Of a DNA stretch of 64,000 nt, positions 14,950-28,295 are shown piece after piece. The stretch is from Tubulanus polymorphus. Lineage: Eukaryota > Animalia > Nemertea. The position numbers and the translations under genes are program-made. Each line of letters opens with the position of its first letter. The first letter of the stretch is position 1. The stretch is taken from the NCBI RefSeq assembly GCF_964204645.1, contig NC_134035.1, positions 3,100,001 to 3,164,000 of the forward strand, given 5' to 3'. The notes below the pieces were generated by a model. It had not been told where the DNA came from and ran no database searches. It worked only from the letters and a program-made list of their open reading frames with translations.

Positions 14950-16906
14950 ATGACGGTTGGGGCTCGAACGGCCAGGCATCTCTTCAATGTAGTCAAGTAT
15001 GGCTGTATGGCTCATTGTCTAGTGGAGTTCACAGGAACCGTCGTACAGGTGAGCAGGATTCAAGCTGGCCGAATTCATAAATCGATTTCCTAGTGGTACG
15101 AATCATATGTTTGTTTGTTTCAGTGTGATGGGCCATCGATGTCGCCGACATTGAAGTCTAGGGATCTTGTTCTTGCTGAAAGGCTGTCTGTTGGTCTTCG
15201 GAAAATCGTACCGTACGTATAGGCCTACGTAACGTTAATATCTTTTCCATTTCAGGCTGTCAAGCATTATCCCTGCTTTCCAAAATTTAGCGTGATTTTT
15301 TGGTGAAGAAGGTGCTTTTTCCCTACTTACAAAAATGCAGTCCTCTTGCTGAAATTCTGAACGTCTGCGTGTTTTGAATTTCCGTATCCATGGTAAAAGT
15401 TCTGGTACTGCCACCTCAGAAGTCGATACCAATCATACCCGTGCAGCATGTTTTCAATGGTGAACGTGCCAGAAAATAAGACTTGAGAATATTGGAAACA
15501 AAGTATTTGAGAATGGAATATGTAATGGCCCCAGTGAAGCCATCGAAAATCCTGACCAAGTTGATCCTAACTCCCCACTTCACCTTTCAATGGTTCCACT
15601 TGACAGCCCGCCATTTCAATGAAACTCAGTCTCTGATCGTCATCAATTTCTATCTGAATTTCTATCTGTATTTTGAAGCCAGCTTTAATCATCTAGTCAA
15701 ATCACATGAAGTCTGTCTCAATTTGCTATTAAATCTTCTCTCTAACGTTTGCAGGGGTGACATCGTCATTTGCAAGTCGCCGACGAAGCCCGGACAACAG
15801 ATCTGCAAACGAGTGACCGCTCTAGAAGGAGAGTACGTCACAGTCAGTCATGGACCGGCGAAAGGAAAGATGTTTTACGTAAGTATATATACAGTTCCCC
15901 AAGGGTGGATCTAGGGGATGGTCTCAAGGGTCCGTCCACATGATGCCTGCGCCAACCCATTGAGGTGGCTCTTTTCGTCAAGACAGATATCATTTCGACA
16001 CGCCTCCACTCGGAAATTGCGACCTTTCAGGATGTTTCCTACACACAGATATACAGGAACCAGTTTTATAGACCGGTTATACCTTTAACCCAGGGGTTAA
16101 CTCTATTGGAAATTAATTGAGTTAGCCCCCGGGTTAAAGGTTATACCAGACTAGAAAACCATCCCAAGTATATCTTCAGAAATAACAAAACCCGAGGGTT
16201 CCCGATAGAGGTCCAAAACTTGACTGCTTTATTGGAGAAACGTCCTTTCTTTTCTTCTGGACCCCCGGCCTTCCAATTTTCTCAAACCTGCCTCTGTACA
16301 ACCCACGTACTCTTCAAAATATGATCACGTTTACGTCGATTACTGAATGGTTTTACGCTTAACGAGATGAAAATCGATCGTGACAAAATCGATCGTGATA
16401 GAAGAAATTTCCCAGCGGCGAAACGACAGACTCGAGTCTCGGTCTAGATTTTATGGTCTAGTATTGGGAAATGATTTGAGCACACAATCCTCAAATCCAG
16501 CAAAACCTAAAGACCTCATAAAGCAGCAAATTACTTTGATTTTCAAGATTTCCTTAACACGACCTCCCTATGCCAGTAGTATTAATATCATTCACTATAC
16601 CAGTCATACCACACACCACTATCTACGAATGTTGTTTACGAGAAATTAATTCCGTATTTTTTTCTCTCTTCTCTTTCGAAGGTTCCGCGGGGTCACGTTT
16701 GGCTCGAAGGCGACAACGGCGACAACTCGATCGACTCGTGTTACTACGGCGCCGTGCCGTACGGTCTGATCACGAGTCGCGTGTTCTGTCGCGTGTGGCC
16801 GCCCGCCAGTCTCACCAACAAGCAGTTCATCTTGCCGACGAACGTCACGCGCAACCCGGCCGTCTGCGACCAGAAACCGACCGGACCAGAAACCGACGAC
16901 GAGTGA
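14950..16906 (+). CDS. IMMP1L: Mitochondrial inner membrane protease subunit 1 (S26 peptidase), 178 aa
   Basis: Exons 14950-15048, 15124-15212, 15755-15878, 16682-16906, all GT-AG and in phase. Motifs [15 protein letters not shown] (catalytic Ser), [14 protein letters not shown] (catalytic Lys), [27 protein letters not shown]. Confidence 0.95.
16056..16165. mobile_element. Palindromic MITE in IMMP1L intron 3
   Basis: Long hairpin (TATACCTTTAACCCAGGGGTTAACTC...GAGTTAGCCCCCGGGTTAAAGGTTATA). A second copy lies at about 58229-58339. Confidence 0.65.
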
Positions 16907-21579: not shown

Positions 21580-23213
21580 ATGAGCTTTTACGATCGAATG
21601 ATGAACTCGCGGTTTGTGCTGCACACACTGTTAGGGATCGGAGTCGGTGTGCTGATATACAAGTCGAGGAAGGACAGAGCGAGAAGGAATGCTATTCAGC
21701 AGAAACTCAACTCAATACCGCCTGGTATGTGTCCAAAAGTCTTACATCTATCATATTCAAGCTTTTTCGCATTAACTGATTATTTTTATCATTTATCAAC
21801 TAATTTGCAGGTTTAAGTTATAGACAATGCGACGTAATGGAAAGCTCGCTGGACGTCGCTCACCGAGTCGGTGGTCTAATCGACACTAATGTCCTGTTTA
21901 TCGAATCAGATCGAGAAATCGGTAAAGAATTGGTGCAGAAATCCGTCGATTTGTTGTGGGATCGTTACATCATGTTGAGGTTGAAAGTCTTGACGGTGGA
22001 CACTGGCGCGCGGATACTGCCACGATTTCTGGTAGAAATGGAACGATCACCTGTGAAATGTCGAGTCGAATTACGAGACGGGAATGACTGGAAACAGGTG
22101 TTTGAGTCGGAGATTCTACGACCGCTTGACTGCGACGACGGTCCACTGTGGAGAGTGTGCATGCTGAATGTGGACGAGTTCAAATACGCGTTTGTGTTCA
22201 CGTTCCATCACGCGATCGTAGATGGCGCTGCGATCATGCAGATTTTAACCGAATTCCAACGAAACATAGATGTGTTGTTGCGAGGAGTTGAACCTCAGAT
22301 GCCAGACGACTACAGCGATCACAGCCAAGTCATAACACCTAACCTGTCCGAAATGTTGAAGAACGACCCACGGTATGCTTGGTCTATTTCTGATGTGACT
22401 ACCCCGTTACGATTAAGCAAAACAATGTCCACTCCTGACACCGGTTTGGCCGGTGAACTGAGCCGCACACTTGGACCGAAAGGGTCAATCGAATATAAAA
22501 CCAGTATCGAAGAGTTTGAACTTTCCGAAGTACAATCTTCAGCGTTGAGAAAGAAGTGTAAAGAAATGAAATGTACAGTTCATGGCGCTTGTACAGCGGC
22601 CGCTGCTTTGGCTTTGAGAAAATTGGCACAATTAAATGATATAGAAGATGAGTATCTTAGAACATTTCCAACCAGTTTAAACGTCAGTATGAGGAGATAT
22701 GTTAATGCTGCTATGAACGGTCGTTTGGGTAATTTCATTTCAATCATTGGTCTTCCTGTTATGTTGGTGAAGCCCGGCAGCCAAACTCCAGTTGAATTCT
22801 GGGAGCTAGCTCGCGAGTCTACCGAACAGGTTCATCTAGGACTGAACGACGGATTACAATTTCTCTTCACGAAGATGTTAAAGCTTATGCGTTATTTCGG
22901 CTCCGATCGTGGATTCTGTGATATGTGGTCGGGCGGCGGTGACAGTCCTCGTCATAAAATGTTCAATATATCCAATCGTGGTCTGTTCAAGAATGTTCCT
23001 GGTGAGCGTGTTACACGGATAACTGGGGTGTACTGGGCCACTGCCGAACACAGCTGCCCTATGGGCAGATTTACACATAACGTCGTCTCTTTAGACGATA
23101 AGATGTACTGGTCGGTTACTAATTACCTGAACGTAACGCGTCGAGAATCAGCGAGACAATACGCCGATCTGATCAAATCGATTTTAGTCGAAAATATAAT
23201 TCGTGTAGAATGA
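21580..23213 (+). CDS. Membrane-anchored HHxxxDG acyltransferase (condensation/PapA5/alcohol acyltransferase fold), paralog 1, 515 aa
   Basis: Exons 21580-21724 and 21811-23213 (86-nt phase-1 GT-AG intron). N-terminal hydrophobic FVLHTLLGIGVGVLIY followed by a basic KSRKDRARR; motifs GPLWRV, FHHAIVDG, CTVHGACTAA, VSMRR, LGNF, ISNRG. Confidence 0.9.
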
Positions 23214-24220
23214 GAGAGATGCTATTAGTTCGGTTCACGAACACGAGTGTTAATTTGAATACGAAGGCTTCGTGCAATCCATTCCCTAGACTGGGAACCC
23301 GCCATTTGAATAATGTATAAATGTATAGCCAATCAGAGATCGTTTGTGATGAGACAATGTGTATATAAATGTAATGGTAAATATCTATGATAAGATCCTC
23401 AAATTCATGATAAATCACAAGTAGTTGTGTAACGATTTCTAGAACAGGGTTTCGCGTACGAACTTCCCGTCAACCGGATTATGAAAACTATGAATATGCA
23501 TGACAAGTAATGTCCAGCAAACGTTGAGTTTTGGAACTATTAAAGTAATGCTTTTTTCAGACAATATTCGATATAAAAAGCCCTTTTTGGGCTATTGGCC
23601 ATTTTGGCCTTTTTTCGTTGAATTAAAACTTTTAACTTCGGGATGTCAAGCTGTACAACGGGGTATGGGAGTCAGGACAGTCAACCGTGGTTCATGGCGC
23701 TGACGGTCGTTTCTTTACACCTGATGTTATATTATATATGTAAAAATATAAATAAAAAATTTCGGGTGAATATTCGAACTTTTATATGAGTTTTTAATTT
23801 TTTCTGTTGAGGATTCTGTGACGGACAGGGAGGCCCATTAATCTAAGTTCATGCCCATTGAGACCCTTCGCAGATCGATTTCCATCTATGATGTGAAAAA
23901 CGTCTAAAGAAAGTAATAAACTTTTGTTGCGAATCAACACAACGAATGTTTGAAAATGTAAAAGTAGAACTCCAGCTAAAAATAGCTCTATTGTGCGCTC
24001 ACGTATATAAAAATAGTGAGCGGGTAAAATAGGTCAAAATATTCAACCTATACCAGCAATACATGTAGTGGGTTCATGAACGATGTGGGTTTAGTTTAAG
24101 AGTTAAAGTATATTTGTGATCAAGGCAACGATCCTAAATCTGGATGTATACAAGTTTCATTCGAGCAAAAACTGGGACCTTTGTGAGTAAAATACTTCGT
24201 TTTCAAGAATCGGTAGCATT

Positions 24221-25849
24221 ATGAGTCTTTACGATCGTGTGATGAACTCGCGGTTTGTGCTGCACACACTGTTAGGGATCGGAGTCGGTGTGCTGATATA
24301 TAAGTCGAGGAAGGACAGAGCGAGAAGGAATGCCATTCAGCAAAAACTCAACTCTATACCGCCTGGTATGTATCTCAAGTCTTATATCTATCGTATTCAA
24401 GCTTTGTCGCAATAACTGATTAATTTTATCAAACTGTTTGCAGGTTTGAGTTACAGACAATGCGACGTTATGGAAAGCTGGCTGGACGTCGCTCACCGAG
24501 TGGGAGGTCTAATCGACACCAATGTCCTGTTTATCGAATCAGATCGAGAAATCAGTAAAGAATTGGTGCAGAAATCCGTCGACTTGTTGTGGAATCGTTA
24601 CATCATGTTGAGGTTAAAAGTCCTAGAGGTGGACACTGGCGCGCGGATACTGCCACGATTTCTGGTAGAAATGGAACGATCACCTGTGAAATGTCGAGTC
24701 GAATTACGAGACGGGAATGACTGGAAACAGGTGTTTGAGTCGGAGATTCTACGACCGCTTGACTGCGACGACGGTCCACTGTGGAGAGTGTGCATGCTGA
24801 ATGTGGACGAGTACAAGTACGCGTTTGTCTTCACGTTCCATCACGCGATCGTAGATGGCGCTGCGATCATGCAGATTTTAACCGAATTCCAACGAAACAT
24901 AGATGAGTTGTTGCGAGGAGTTGAACCTCAGGTGCCAGACGACTACAGCGATCACAGCCACGTCATAACACCTAACCTGTCCGAAATGTTGAAGGACGAC
25001 CCACGTTATGCTTGGTCTATTTCTGACATAGCTACCCCGTTACAATTAAGTAAAGTAATGTCCAGCACTGACACCGGTTTGGCCGGTGAACTGAGCCGCA
25101 CACTTGGACCGAAAGGGTTAATCGAATATAAAACCAGTATCGAAGAGTTTGAACTTTCCGAAGTAGAATCTTCAGCGTTGAGGAAGAGATGTAAAGAAAT
25201 GAAATGTACAGTTCATGGCGCTTGTACAGCGGCCGCTGCTTTGGCCTTGAGGAAATTGGCGCGATTAAACGGGATAGAAAATAAATATCTTAAAACTTTT
25301 CCAACCAGTTTTAACGTCAGTATGAGGAGATATGTTAATGATGTCGATATGAAAGGGCGCTTAGGTAATTTCATTTCACTAATCGCTCTTCCGCTTGTAT
25401 TAGTGAAGCCCGGCAGCCAAACTCCAGTCGAATTCTGGGAGCTAGCTCGCGAGTCTACCGAAAATGTTCATCTAAGACTGAACAACGGATTACAGTTCGT
25501 CTTCACAAAGACTTTAAAGCTTAGAGGTAATATCGGCTCCGATCGTGGATACCGTGATATGTGGTCGGGCGGCGGTGACAGTCCTCGACATAAATTGTTC
25601 AATATATCCAATCGTGGTCTGTTCAAGACTGTAACTCCGGATGAGCGAGTTACACGTATAACGGGGGTGTACTGGGCCACTGCCGAACACAACAGCGCTA
25701 TGGGCAGATTCGCCCATAACGTCGTCTCTTTAGACGATAAGATGTACTGGTCGGTTACTTATTACCTTAACGTCACGCGTCGGGAATCTGCGAGACAATA
25801 CGCCGATCTGATCAAATCGATTTTAATCGAAAATATATCTGAAGACTGA
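24221..25849 (+). CDS. Membrane-anchored HHxxxDG acyltransferase, paralog 2, 516 aa
   Basis: Exons 24221-24365 and 24444-25849 (78-nt intron). Same architecture, with FHHAIVDG. Confidence 0.9.
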
Positions 25850-25884
25850 GAGAGATACAAGATCGGGTCCGGGACCAAATTACT

Positions 25885-25948
25885 TTAATAATAATTAATA
25901 ATAATTTAATAATAATTTAATAATAATAATAATAATAGTAATTAATAA
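25885..25948. repeat. Imperfect (TAA)n microsatellite
   Basis: TAATAATAATTAATAATAATTTAATAATAAT... run just after the paralog 2 stop codon. Confidence 0.85.
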
Positions 25949-26485
25949 CTTTACTGTATTCCGGATCCAGAAAGGTATTCTGTTCAGGGCACCTTTCTTT
26001 GGCCACTGGCCAATTAACAGACACCCGTGTGGCATCATTAAGGCTCCGAACACTAAGGTGTTGGAGAATATATGTAATCAGGTGATGAAGATGCCGCACG
26101 TGTGACTGATTCTTAGGACAGGGTTTTCGTACGATCTTCATCTCACCAAGTGACTTATAAAACTGTGGACACTATACAAGCGTTCCAGAACTATATCGGG
26201 CATATAAGGCTGTTGGGACCGTTTAAATTATCATTTTTCAGCCAAGATTCAAAAGGAACAGCCATTTCGGACTGTTTGCTAGGCTCTTCTTCGTTAGATT
26301 ACAACATCTAACATCATTATCCAGAGGAACGTATGGAAAGGAAGACGGTCAACCGGATGGTTCCTGGATTCCTATCATACCATTATGCACCATATAGATT
26401 AATGAACATTAAACGGGCCTCGATTATTGCTCGATTATATGCAGTGACTGCTAATGTACATGAATAAAAAGATGTTAATTAATAA

Positions 26486-26517
26486 AACTTGAACTTGAAC
26501 TTGAACTTGAACTTGAA
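26486..26517. repeat. (AACTTG)n microsatellite
   Basis: About five tandem AACTTG units. Confidence 0.85.
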
Positions 26518-26680
26518 TTAACATAAGAATGGTTCAAAAAGTGTTGTCAAAACAAACATGGAACTCCCGACACATTCTCGCCGAGATAGCAGTAAATGAC
26601 GAGGTCAAATACGACGAGTAATTCACATGTAATAATCTACCTTCAAATACGAACACCATACATTAACTTGACACATAGGT

Positions 26681-28295
26681 ATGGGTTTGTACGATCGTGT
26701 GATGAACTCGCGGTTTGTGCTGCACACACTGTTAGGGATCGGAGTCGGGGTGCTGATATACAAGTCGAGGAAGGACAGAGCGAGAAGGAATGCCATTCAA
26801 CAAAAACTCAACTCAATATCTCCTGGTATGTGTCTTATATCTATCGTATTCAAGCTTAGTCGCATTAACTGAGTATTTTATCGAACTGTTTGCAGGTTTA
26901 AGTTATAGACAATGCGACGTAATGGAAAGCTCGCTGGACGTCGCTCACCGAGTCGGTGGTCTAATCGACACCAATGTCCTGTTTATCGAATCAGATCGAG
27001 AAATCGGTAAAGAATTGGTGCAGAAATCCGTCGATTTGTTGTGGGATCGTTACATCATGTTGAGGTTAAAAGTCCTAGAGGTGGACACTGGCGCGCGGAT
27101 ACTGCCACGATTTCTGGTAGAAATGGAGCGATCGCCTGTGAAATGTCGAGTCGAATTACGAGACGGTAATGACTGGAAACAGGTGTTTGAGTCGGAGATT
27201 CTACGACCGCTTGACTGCGACGACGGTCCACTGTGGAGAGTGTGCATGCTGAATGTGGACGAGTTCAAGTACGCGTTTGTGTTCACGTTCCATCACGTGA
27301 TCGTAGATGGCGCTTCGATCATGCAGATTTTAACCGAATTCCAACGAAACATAGATGAGTTATTGCGAAAAACTGAACCTCAGGTGCCAGACGACTGCAG
27401 CGATCACAGCCAAGTCATAACACCTAACCTGTCCGAAATGTTGAAGGACGACCCACGTTATGCGTGGTCTATTTCAGACATTGCCCTATTTCGATTTAGC
27501 AAAGCAATGTCCACTCCTGACACCGGTTTTGCCGGCGAACTGAGCCGCACACTTGGACCGAAAGGGTCAATCGAATATAAAACCAGTATCGAAGAGTTTG
27601 AACTTTCCGAAGTAGAATCTTTAACGTTGAGGAAGAAGTGTAAAGAAATGAAATGTACAGTTCATGGCGCTTGTACAGCGGCCGCTGCTTTGGCCTTGAG
27701 GAAATTAGCGCAATTAAACGCTATAGAAGATAAATATCTTACAACATTTCCAACCAGTTTAAACGTCAGTATGAGGAGATATGTGAATGCTGCTATGAGC
27801 GGTCTTTTGGGTGATTTTGTTTCAGTCTTTGCTCTGCCACTTCTGTTAGTGAAGCCCGGCAGCCGAACTCCAGTCGAATTCTGGGAGCTAGCTCGCGAGT
27901 CTACCGAACAGGTTCATCTAAGACTGAACGACGGATTACAGTTTGTCTTCATGAAAATGGCAAAGCTTAAGCGTTATTTCGGATCCGATGGTGCATCTCG
28001 TGAAACGTGGTCCGGCGGCGGTGACCGCCCTCGTTATAACATTTTCAACATATCCAATCGTGGACTGTTCAAGACTGTCCCTGGTGAGCGTGTTACGCGG
28101 ATAACTGGGATATACTGTGCAACTGCTGTTCACGGCAATAGCAACATGGCGAGATTTTCCCATAACGTCGTCTCTTTAGACGATAAGATGTACTGGTCGG
28201 TGAATACTTACCTGAACGTCACGCGTCGAGAATCGGCGAGACAATACGCCGATCTGATCAAATCGATTTTAATCGAAAATATATCTGTTGAATGA
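26681..28295 (+). CDS. Membrane-anchored HHxxxDG acyltransferase, paralog 3, 514 aa
   Basis: Exons 26681-26825 and 26896-28295 (70-nt intron). Active-site motif FHHVIVDG. Confidence 0.9.

Follow-up and report, generated by a model that had tools for sequence, protein, structure and literature searches.

Three adjacent genes in the ribbon worm Tubulanus polymorphus encode stand-alone proteins with the HHxxxDG motif, and raise the questions of which enzyme family they belong to, how that family came to reside in an animal and what reaction its members may catalyze. The genes are set within a 14-Mb chromosome-scale piece (C11), of which a 64-kb window, the whole stretch of DNA analysed, provides the positions used below.

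Structure of the tandem triplet

Three intact two-exon genes, coding for proteins of 515, 516 and 514 amino acids, occupy positions 21580-28295 of the forward strand. Their long forward-strand open frames containing HHAIVDG or HHVIVDG run at 21837-23213, 24446-25849 and 26790-28295. Coordinates, sizes and motif in the preliminary description all proved correct, as did the tandem arrangement in units of approximately 2.5 kb (direct repeats with spacings of approximately 2633 and 2452 nt) and the splicing of a short anchor exon to an uninterrupted catalytic exon of 1.4 kb. In all three genes exon 1 measures 145 nt and codes for a transmembrane helix and a basic flank, the intron is 70-86 nt long and of phase 1, and the splice sites are alike (donor G/GTATGT, acceptor TTTGCAG/G, the slash marking the exon boundary). 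The exon translations of gene 1 equal, piece by piece, the RefSeq protein P0001 (515 aa, uncharacterized protein LOC141912490 isoform X1), which was used for whole-protein work, the exon pieces being searched separately. The features are:

21580-21724, forward: gene 1 exon 1, 48 codons plus 1 nt, equal to residues 1-48 of P0001
21613-21660, forward: gene 1 transmembrane helix, approximately residues 12-27, with the basic flank next
21725-21810, forward: gene 1 intron, 86 nt, GT-AG, phase 1
21811-23213, forward: gene 1 exon 2, 1403 nt with stop, residues 49-515, the whole condensation-domain fold
22206-22226, forward: gene 1 catalytic motif HHAIVDG, with His181, His182, Asp186 and Gly187
24221-24365, forward: gene 2 exon 1 (anchor)
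24366-24443, forward: gene 2 intron, 78 nt, GT-AG, phase 1
24444-25849, forward: gene 2 exon 2, catalytic domain, HHAIVDG at 24839-24859, protein of 516 aa
26681-26825, forward: gene 3 exon 1 (anchor)
26826-26895, forward: gene 3 intron, 70 nt, GT-AG, phase 1
26896-28295, forward: gene 3 exon 2, catalytic domain, HHVIVDG at 27291-27311, protein of 514 aa

Apart from these three, no open frame above 210 aa is present in the 64-kb window, which fits the earlier observation that neighbouring genes are intron-rich.

The condensation-domain superfamily and AzeD

All three copies match Pfam Condensation (PF00668; 54-58 bits, E 1e-14 to 1e-16, cut-off 30.6) and, with a lower score, Pfam AATase (PF07247; 34.6-37.0 bits, cut-off 22). 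Among the 46 members of the family assembled here, Condensation matches 40 and AATase exceeds its cut-off in 38. An AlphaFold model with a pLDDT of 91 predicts a two-lobed, V-shaped fold of two halves resembling chloramphenicol acetyltransferase (CAT); it was built from the 46-row alignment A1, and single-sequence prediction of P0001 gave a pLDDT of 32. The N-terminal membrane helix and linker (residues 1-44) are followed by the CAT-like C-domain (residues 49-515), with HHxxxDG on its N-terminal lobe. The motif is canonical in all three copies; all 16 Tubulanus paralogues retain its second His and the Asp-Gly, and across the family Asp186 is invariant, His182 is present in 41 of 46 members and His181 in only 31. 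On profile, predicted fold and HHxxxDG, the three proteins belong to the Condensation-domain/CAT-like superfamily, so that the condensation/PapA5-type fold proposed earlier is borne out.

Narrower assignments fared differently. Of the profiles suggested in the preliminary description, PapA_C stayed below its cut-off of 30 (25.7, 17.8 and 18.4 bits); NCBIfam PapA5 reached 13.7 bits against a cut-off of 396, and PapA5 proper was rejected. Membership in the WS/DGAT wax ester synthases was likewise rejected (WS_DGAT_cat 14.8-18.6 bits, cut-off 23.6; TIGR02946 26.7 bits, cut-off 310). Adenylation and carrier domains are absent, only C-type Pfam families matching these discrete proteins of 514-516 aa. 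Unlike the modular condensation domains found in nonribosomal peptide synthetases (NRPS; PF00668, including the starter C domains CDA-C1 and RzmA-Cs), the worm proteins belong to no module, and they are separated from NRPS C domains in the tree.

The closest characterised relative is the bacterial AzeD of the "C_standalone" clade. The family profile aligns with AzeD over its full length (E 2.2e-49; next chain 3.4e-27). AzeD is by far the best match in both sequence and structure, at an identity of only 16%, and no other C-domain subtype lies as near to the worm proteins. AzeD of Pseudomonas aeruginosa (PDB 8S6L), the founding and only studied C_standalone member, is a soluble protein encoded in an NRPS cluster and acts as a cofactor-free dehydratase on a free intermediate, by a mechanism tied to its Pro-His variant of the motif; the first His is variable in approximately one third of its clade, and eukaryotic relatives are unmentioned (bioRxiv 10.64898/2026.07.17.738954). 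The worm proteins differ from AzeD in having His-His instead of the Pro-His variant, in carrying an N-terminal membrane helix and in being encoded outside any biosynthetic cluster.

PapA5 of Mycobacterium tuberculosis (PDB 1Q9J) is weakly related in sequence (family profile E 4.6e-8), has no membrane helix and works with a partner polyketide synthase carrier protein, whereas the Tubulanus genome yielded only two ketosynthase loci, a count that is a lower bound. The fungal Atf1/Atf2/Sli1 enzymes (AATase, PF07247) are eukaryotic, membrane-associated and acyl-CoA dependent, with alcohols, sterols and xenobiotics as substrates. Their likeness to the worm proteins is by profile (AATase above cut-off) and by predicted structure, where the models are similar (TM 0.74); as far as seen, they do not have the worm-type arrangement of N-terminal anchor and G-x3-R-x5-E motif.

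Distribution, introns and age of the family

The preliminary description treated the genes as a singular occurrence in an animal, which overstated the case. Full-length relatives with 25-31% identity occur in Cnidaria (corals and sea anemones), Hemichordata (acorn worms) and Mollusca (a snail), namely the Condensation domain-containing proteins of Nematostella (A7REQ3), Acropora, Porites, Ptychodera, Glandiceps and Gigantopelta, which share family, length and N-terminal anchor with the worm proteins. They were found by exhaustive protein search; a word-based search (exon-2 query, alignment A1) gave almost none. Similar predicted structures also form large arthropod clusters, and further clusters from plants, oomycetes and fungi were seen in the Atlas. 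As expected earlier, no characterised animal orthologue was met, and a description of the animal family was not found in the open literature searched.

Among bacteria, one full-length relative, anchor included, lies in a polyketide synthase (PKS)/glycosyltransferase cluster. Bacterial relatives are found directly after a macrolide-type glycosyltransferase and once inside a PKS/sulfotransferase/MFS cluster, neighbours that point to a tailoring context. A bacterial genome search with the bacterial member P0020 alone returned no relative. In the tree a branch with 100% SH-aLRT support divides the stand-alone family from NRPS C domains; the family forms phylum-level clades in the other animals, while the soluble bacterial relatives P0002, P0003 and P0148 branch at its base; these three alone represented the soluble bacterial relatives, AzeD and its 35 homologues being left out. 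A grouping with P0020 outside all other anchor-bearing rows (animal and unnamed) was not rejected by the AU test (44 rows, LG+G4, p 0.083). The animal family as a whole may be of ancient bacterial origin.

The Tubulanus genome holds 16 intact paralogues on eight chromosomes, 21-29% identical to the window gene, and in addition one fragment. The acceptor lies at the same site in 16/16 paralogues, and a matching upstream anchor exon is detectable in 13; the shared site indicates that the intron is older than the family expansion. In contrast to this phase-1 intron and 16-gene expansion, the animal relatives encode anchor and catalytic domain in a single exon, as seen in Nematostella, Ptychodera and Gigantopelta. 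An N-terminal hydrophobic helix ahead of the conserved G-x3-R-x5-E motif is found in 32/46 family members, one of them bacterial. Since full-length anchor-bearing relatives are single-exon in cnidarians, hemichordates and a mollusc, and a bacterial relative also has the anchor, the anchor is ancestral, and the intron between anchor and catalytic domain is a gain of the nemertean lineage that preceded the family expansion. The intron comparison suggested earlier thus runs contrary to the idea of an added targeting exon. Retroposition or recent horizontal acquisition in the worm is equally unsupported, given the 16 paralogues, eight chromosomes and one intron site.

Recent horizontal transfer into the worm, or bacterial DNA contaminating the assembly, would account for a long catalytic exon without an intron and for nearest characterised relatives that are bacterial, but is scarcely credible and was rejected, since the genes have spliceosomal introns and a chromosome-scale setting, the 16 diverged paralogues share one intron site and other animals have phylum-level clades of their own. 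The triplet itself is younger: the three genes are recent tandem duplicates, 87-89% identical, of one member of the old 16-gene Tubulanus family. They might be unexpressed, decaying or non-catalytic copies, as the fragmentary family member elsewhere in the genome could suggest, and a 2015 sequencing run, only guessed to be RNA, contained almost no words of the stretch. This is nevertheless very improbable, as all three frames, all six splice sites and the catalytic motif are intact, the RefSeq model shares the same structure and dN/dS amounts to 0.32-0.36 for exon 2 and 0.09-0.15 for exon 1. The three copies are under purifying selection (dN/dS 0.3).

Proposed reaction and biological meaning

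Our best guess at the reaction, with an even chance of being right, is that an acyl group passes from acyl-CoA to a lipophilic acceptor. Under the positive-inside rule, the strongly basic flank that follows the helix (+5, compared with +2 ahead of it) would hold the catalytic domain at the cytosolic face of an internal membrane, although the charge of this flank varies among homologues and is negative in some, which counts against this placement. The membrane would be that of the endoplasmic reticulum or, given the modest hydrophobicity of the helix, the mitochondrial outer membrane. There His182 may serve as the general base towards a small molecule that is free and soluble in the membrane, most likely so that an acyl group would pass from an acyl-CoA thioester to the hydroxyl or amine of the acceptor and yield an ester or amide. 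Transfer to such acceptors is the reaction of PapA5, WS/DGAT, Tri3 and yeast Atf1/Atf2. The diverged paralogues could cover different acceptors or acyl chains in specialised lipid, defence-compound or detoxification chemistry. The dehydratase activity of AzeD, and PapA_C and WS_DGAT_cat scores under the Pfam cut-offs, count against an acyltransferase.

The acyl chain might instead come from the carrier protein of a fatty-acid or polyketide synthase and be off-loaded onto an alcohol, as in PapA5. This is improbable: the few ketosynthase loci stand against 16 paralogues, the window has no synthase gene, and both PapA_C and PapA5 itself match poorly. A search of the Tubulanus genome turned up no NRPS-type C domains either, which leaves the 16 enzymes without megasynthase partners and favours CoA thioesters. 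Less easily set aside, if still rather unlikely, is AzeD-like chemistry without an acyl donor, in which the conserved His would promote dehydration, another elimination or isomerisation of a free small molecule at the membrane. AzeD being the best match, and itself a stand-alone dehydratase of the C family, speaks for it, as does the variable first His in both its clade and the animal family. Against it are the canonical HH of the window genes where the AzeD mechanism is linked to Pro-His, the low identity, the AATase match, and the fact that dehydratase activity in C_standalone is known from AzeD alone. Acyl transfer from acyl-CoA is the reading kept here.

The gene structure offers a clean case of intron gain within an otherwise intronless, possibly bacterial-derived gene family. 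We tentatively propose, with clearly less than even confidence, that these proteins represent a so far unrecognised class of animal-encoded enzymes that tailor natural products or lipids. The class would be an ancient, membrane-anchored offshoot of C_standalone that animals acquired from bacteria before cnidarians and bilaterians diverged; it would have persisted in several phyla of marine animals and multiplied in the ribbon worm, where it would make esters, amides or dehydrated metabolites particular to that lineage, for defence or signalling. Animal-encoded small-molecule biosynthesis is only now beginning to be recognised, as in the coral terpene cyclases and mollusc polyketide synthases. 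Animal NRPSs are a further example (PMC10531068). The family described here belongs to the NRPS condensation superfamily, has an intact catalytic motif, is under selection, extends over no fewer than four marine phyla and lacks a known product, and it ties animals to a just-defined bacterial clade whose sole studied member performs unexpected chemistry. Identifying its substrates could bring new animal lipids or defence compounds to light, and would also yield soluble single-domain catalysts for ester and amide formation.

Structure and divergence of the tandem genes

The 64-kb window covers positions 3100001-3164000 of chromosome piece C11 of the nemertean Tubulanus polymorphus. Three long open frames on its plus strand encode the motifs HHAIVDG, HHAIVDG and HHVIVDG, and the direct repeat units of the corresponding genes are spaced about 2.5-2.6 kb apart. 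Besides these, no open frame longer than 210 aa was found within the 64 kb.

15483-15914, plus strand: open frame with a match to Peptidase_S26 (signal peptidase), which probably represents one exon of an adjacent gene
21580-23213, plus strand: gene 1, anchor exon and catalytic exon
24221-25849, plus strand: gene 2, same arrangement
26681-28295, plus strand: gene 3, same arrangement

As read from the sequence, exon 1 of each gene begins with ATG and comprises 145 nt, and the phase 1 donor (G/GTATGT) and acceptor (TTTGCAG/G) are common to the three. The introns of genes 1, 2 and 3 are 86, 78 and 70 nt long, the second exons 1403, 1406 and 1400 nt, and the predicted products 515, 516 and 514 aa. 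The exon pieces were searched separately, and the whole-protein analyses were based on P0001, the RefSeq protein for gene 1 ("uncharacterized protein LOC141912490 isoform X1"), which is identical to the exon 1 and exon 2 translations when compared piecewise; its Gly49 codon is interrupted by the intron. Exon structure, reading frames and P0001 agree with the preliminary description of three intact genes of approximately 515 aa with HHxxxDG in units of about 2.5 kb, and a short exon for the hydrophobic anchor helix, spliced to a single catalytic exon of about 1.4 kb, recurs in all three.

The copies share 87-89% protein identity, have undamaged frames and splice sites, and display lower dN/dS in exon 1 (0.09-0.15) than in exon 2 (0.32-0.36). 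Synonymous divergence is mosaic (21811-28295), with dS of about 0.1 over codons 1-150 of exon 2, against 0.26-0.42 over its final third. Since, in addition, genes 2 and 3 share 94% identity in the intron but have dissimilar upstream regions, gene conversion among the copies is suggested. One sequencing run from 2015, guessed to be RNA, holds almost none of the words of this stretch; four other runs are of unknown kind.

Fold and distribution of the family

All three copies exceed the Pfam cut-offs for Condensation, with 54-58 against 30.6 bits, and for AATase, with 35-37 against 22 bits, but score below those for PapA_C and WS_DGAT_cat. The AlphaFold model of P0001, built from the 46-sequence family alignment (pLDDT 90.9, pTM 0.91), places a long helix at residues 3-44, followed by a domain of two lobes that spans residues 49-515. 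A Foldseek search with this model yielded 259 or more PDB matches at E ≤0.001, and the best 50 of these were all condensation-family or CAT-type acyltransferase chains. Profile and structure searches thus concur on the condensation/PapA5-type fold proposed earlier, with no other fold in the top 50.

Foldseek values for selected structures matched by the predicted P0001 model
CDA starter C domain: 30.3
PapA5: 29.5
Tri3: 28.4
RzmA starter C domain with C8-CoA: 28.0
WS/DGAT: 25.2

An exhaustive protein search gave 4506 matches at E ≤0.001; among the 150 best, some 60 are stand-alone proteins matched in full length, with 440-570 aa. They include cnidarian (Nematostella, Acropora, Porites, Actinostola, Exaiptasia), hemichordate (Ptychodera, Glandiceps) and mollusc (Gigantopelta) members and one named bacterial member, from a Candidatus Schekmanbacteria MAG. 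Two more lie on eukaryote-like contigs of 390-460 kb with sparse, short gene calls, among them trypsin and CUB fragments on one contig. On a 459-kb eukaryote-like contig the full-length gene is accompanied, at a distance of about 6 kb, by a second Condensation-family fragment (L022, 2794-3675, minus strand); Tubulanus is therefore not alone in having local duplicates of the family. The motif is degenerate in some cnidarian-clade members (P0013 of the Acropora cluster and alignment rows P0008 and P0010), and in the Acropora cluster Gln occupies the catalytic His position. Members lacking the canonical motif may be inactive or have another chemistry. ESM Atlas neighbours by features and structure, which serve as leads to candidate homologues, include fungal alcohol acetyltransferases and PapA5-like clusters from bacteria, as well as clusters from oomycetes, plants and arthropods; those of the arthropods are large and consist of uncharacterised proteins of 536-550 aa.

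Introns and origin

In 32 of the 46 aligned members, the bacterial one included, a hydrophobic helix stands at the N-terminus, ahead of the conserved motif. In Nematostella, Ptychodera and Gigantopelta the gene is a single exon, anchor included, and one exon covers residues 6-517 in Glandiceps. The anchor is thus ancestral and the Tubulanus intron a lineage-specific gain, which contradicts the earlier proposal that a targeting exon was acquired.

The Tubulanus assembly contains 16 intact copies on eight chromosome pieces and one fragment. Identity between the paralogues and the window gene is 21-29%; other tandem sets comprise three copies on C5 and two on C2, and two copies on C3 are separated by 36 kb. 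The x-H-x3-D-G motif is kept in all 16. An AG acceptor lies directly 5' of the conserved G-x3-R motif in 15 of them (the paralogue at L016 carries Gln in place of the Arg and was hence missed by the pattern search), and a short upstream exon with a hydrophobic helix and a phase 1 G/GT donor was located for 13. Because these features are common to the paralogues, the intron predates the family expansion. The 17th copy (C3, 24325481-24326057, two short minus-strand pieces) is probably a pseudogene.

In the tree the stand-alone family is split from NRPS C domains (SH-aLRT 100%), with the soluble, bacterial-looking P0002, P0003 and P0148 at its base. The anchored core is a polytomy of hemichordate, mollusc-containing, cnidarian-containing and at least two Tubulanus clades. 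The starred branches are compatible with a single nemertean origin, which is favoured since the Tubulanus copies have the intron in common. As to the horizontal acquisition envisaged in the preliminary description, recent transfer into Tubulanus is excluded. The Schekmanbacteria protein is placed within the cnidarian-containing clade, and a tree forcing it outside all other anchor-bearing rows, animal as well as unnamed, is not rejected (p-AU 0.083), so that an ancient bacterial origin of the family is possible.

Genomic context and putative function

A UDPGT/EryCIII-like glycosyltransferase lies directly 5' of the family member in both bacterial relatives examined.

L020, 7460-11563: P0020, the anchored Schekmanbacteria member, preceded by this glycosyltransferase and a sulfotransferase; the cluster further encodes a KS-AT synthase, a hydrolase and an MFS transporter
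L024, 35-2696: P0148, a soluble member, directly 3' of the glycosyltransferase
L023, 8001-9491: Gigantopelta aegis family gene
L023, 11743-12684: single-exon UbiA prenyltransferase gene, 2.2 kb downstream

The two Gigantopelta genes might form a small metabolic gene pair. No biosynthetic neighbours of the worm genes were seen within the 64-kb window, only two ketosynthase loci were found in the Tubulanus genome, and the family-profile search of that genome returned no NRPS-type C domains.

The window proteins combine a membrane helix with a C-type catalytic domain that is intact and under selection. The helix is flanked by charges of +2 before and +5 after, so by the positive-inside rule the catalytic domain would face the cytosol, where acyl-CoA is supplied. 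A signal anchor of the mitochondrial outer membrane would likewise be consistent with the modest hydrophobicity and basic flank. In the reading that we prefer, His182 would assist the transfer of an acyl group from acyl-CoA to the hydroxyl or amine function of an acceptor soluble in the membrane, and different paralogues would serve different substrates; we consider the chances of this scheme to be evenly balanced. The main rival, which seems rather unlikely, is a chemistry without acyl donor like that of AzeD, which dehydrates a free pathway intermediate and founds the "C_standalone" clade of discrete condensation-family proteins (10.64898/2026.07.17.738954). The family profile matches AzeD over its full length (E 2.2e-49; next chain 3.4e-27), as compared with E 4.6e-8 for PapA5 and 3e-6 for WS/DGAT. 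In AzeD, however, Pro-His replaces His-His, whereas the window proteins have His-His (HHAIVDG/HHVIVDG); the first His varies in one third of the clade, and eukaryotic relatives go unmentioned (10.64898/2026.07.17.738954).

The annotation of these genes reads uncharacterised only, and a literature search for a description of the animal family found no paper. The family is an animal, membrane-anchored form of a known kind of enzyme rather than a categorically new system.
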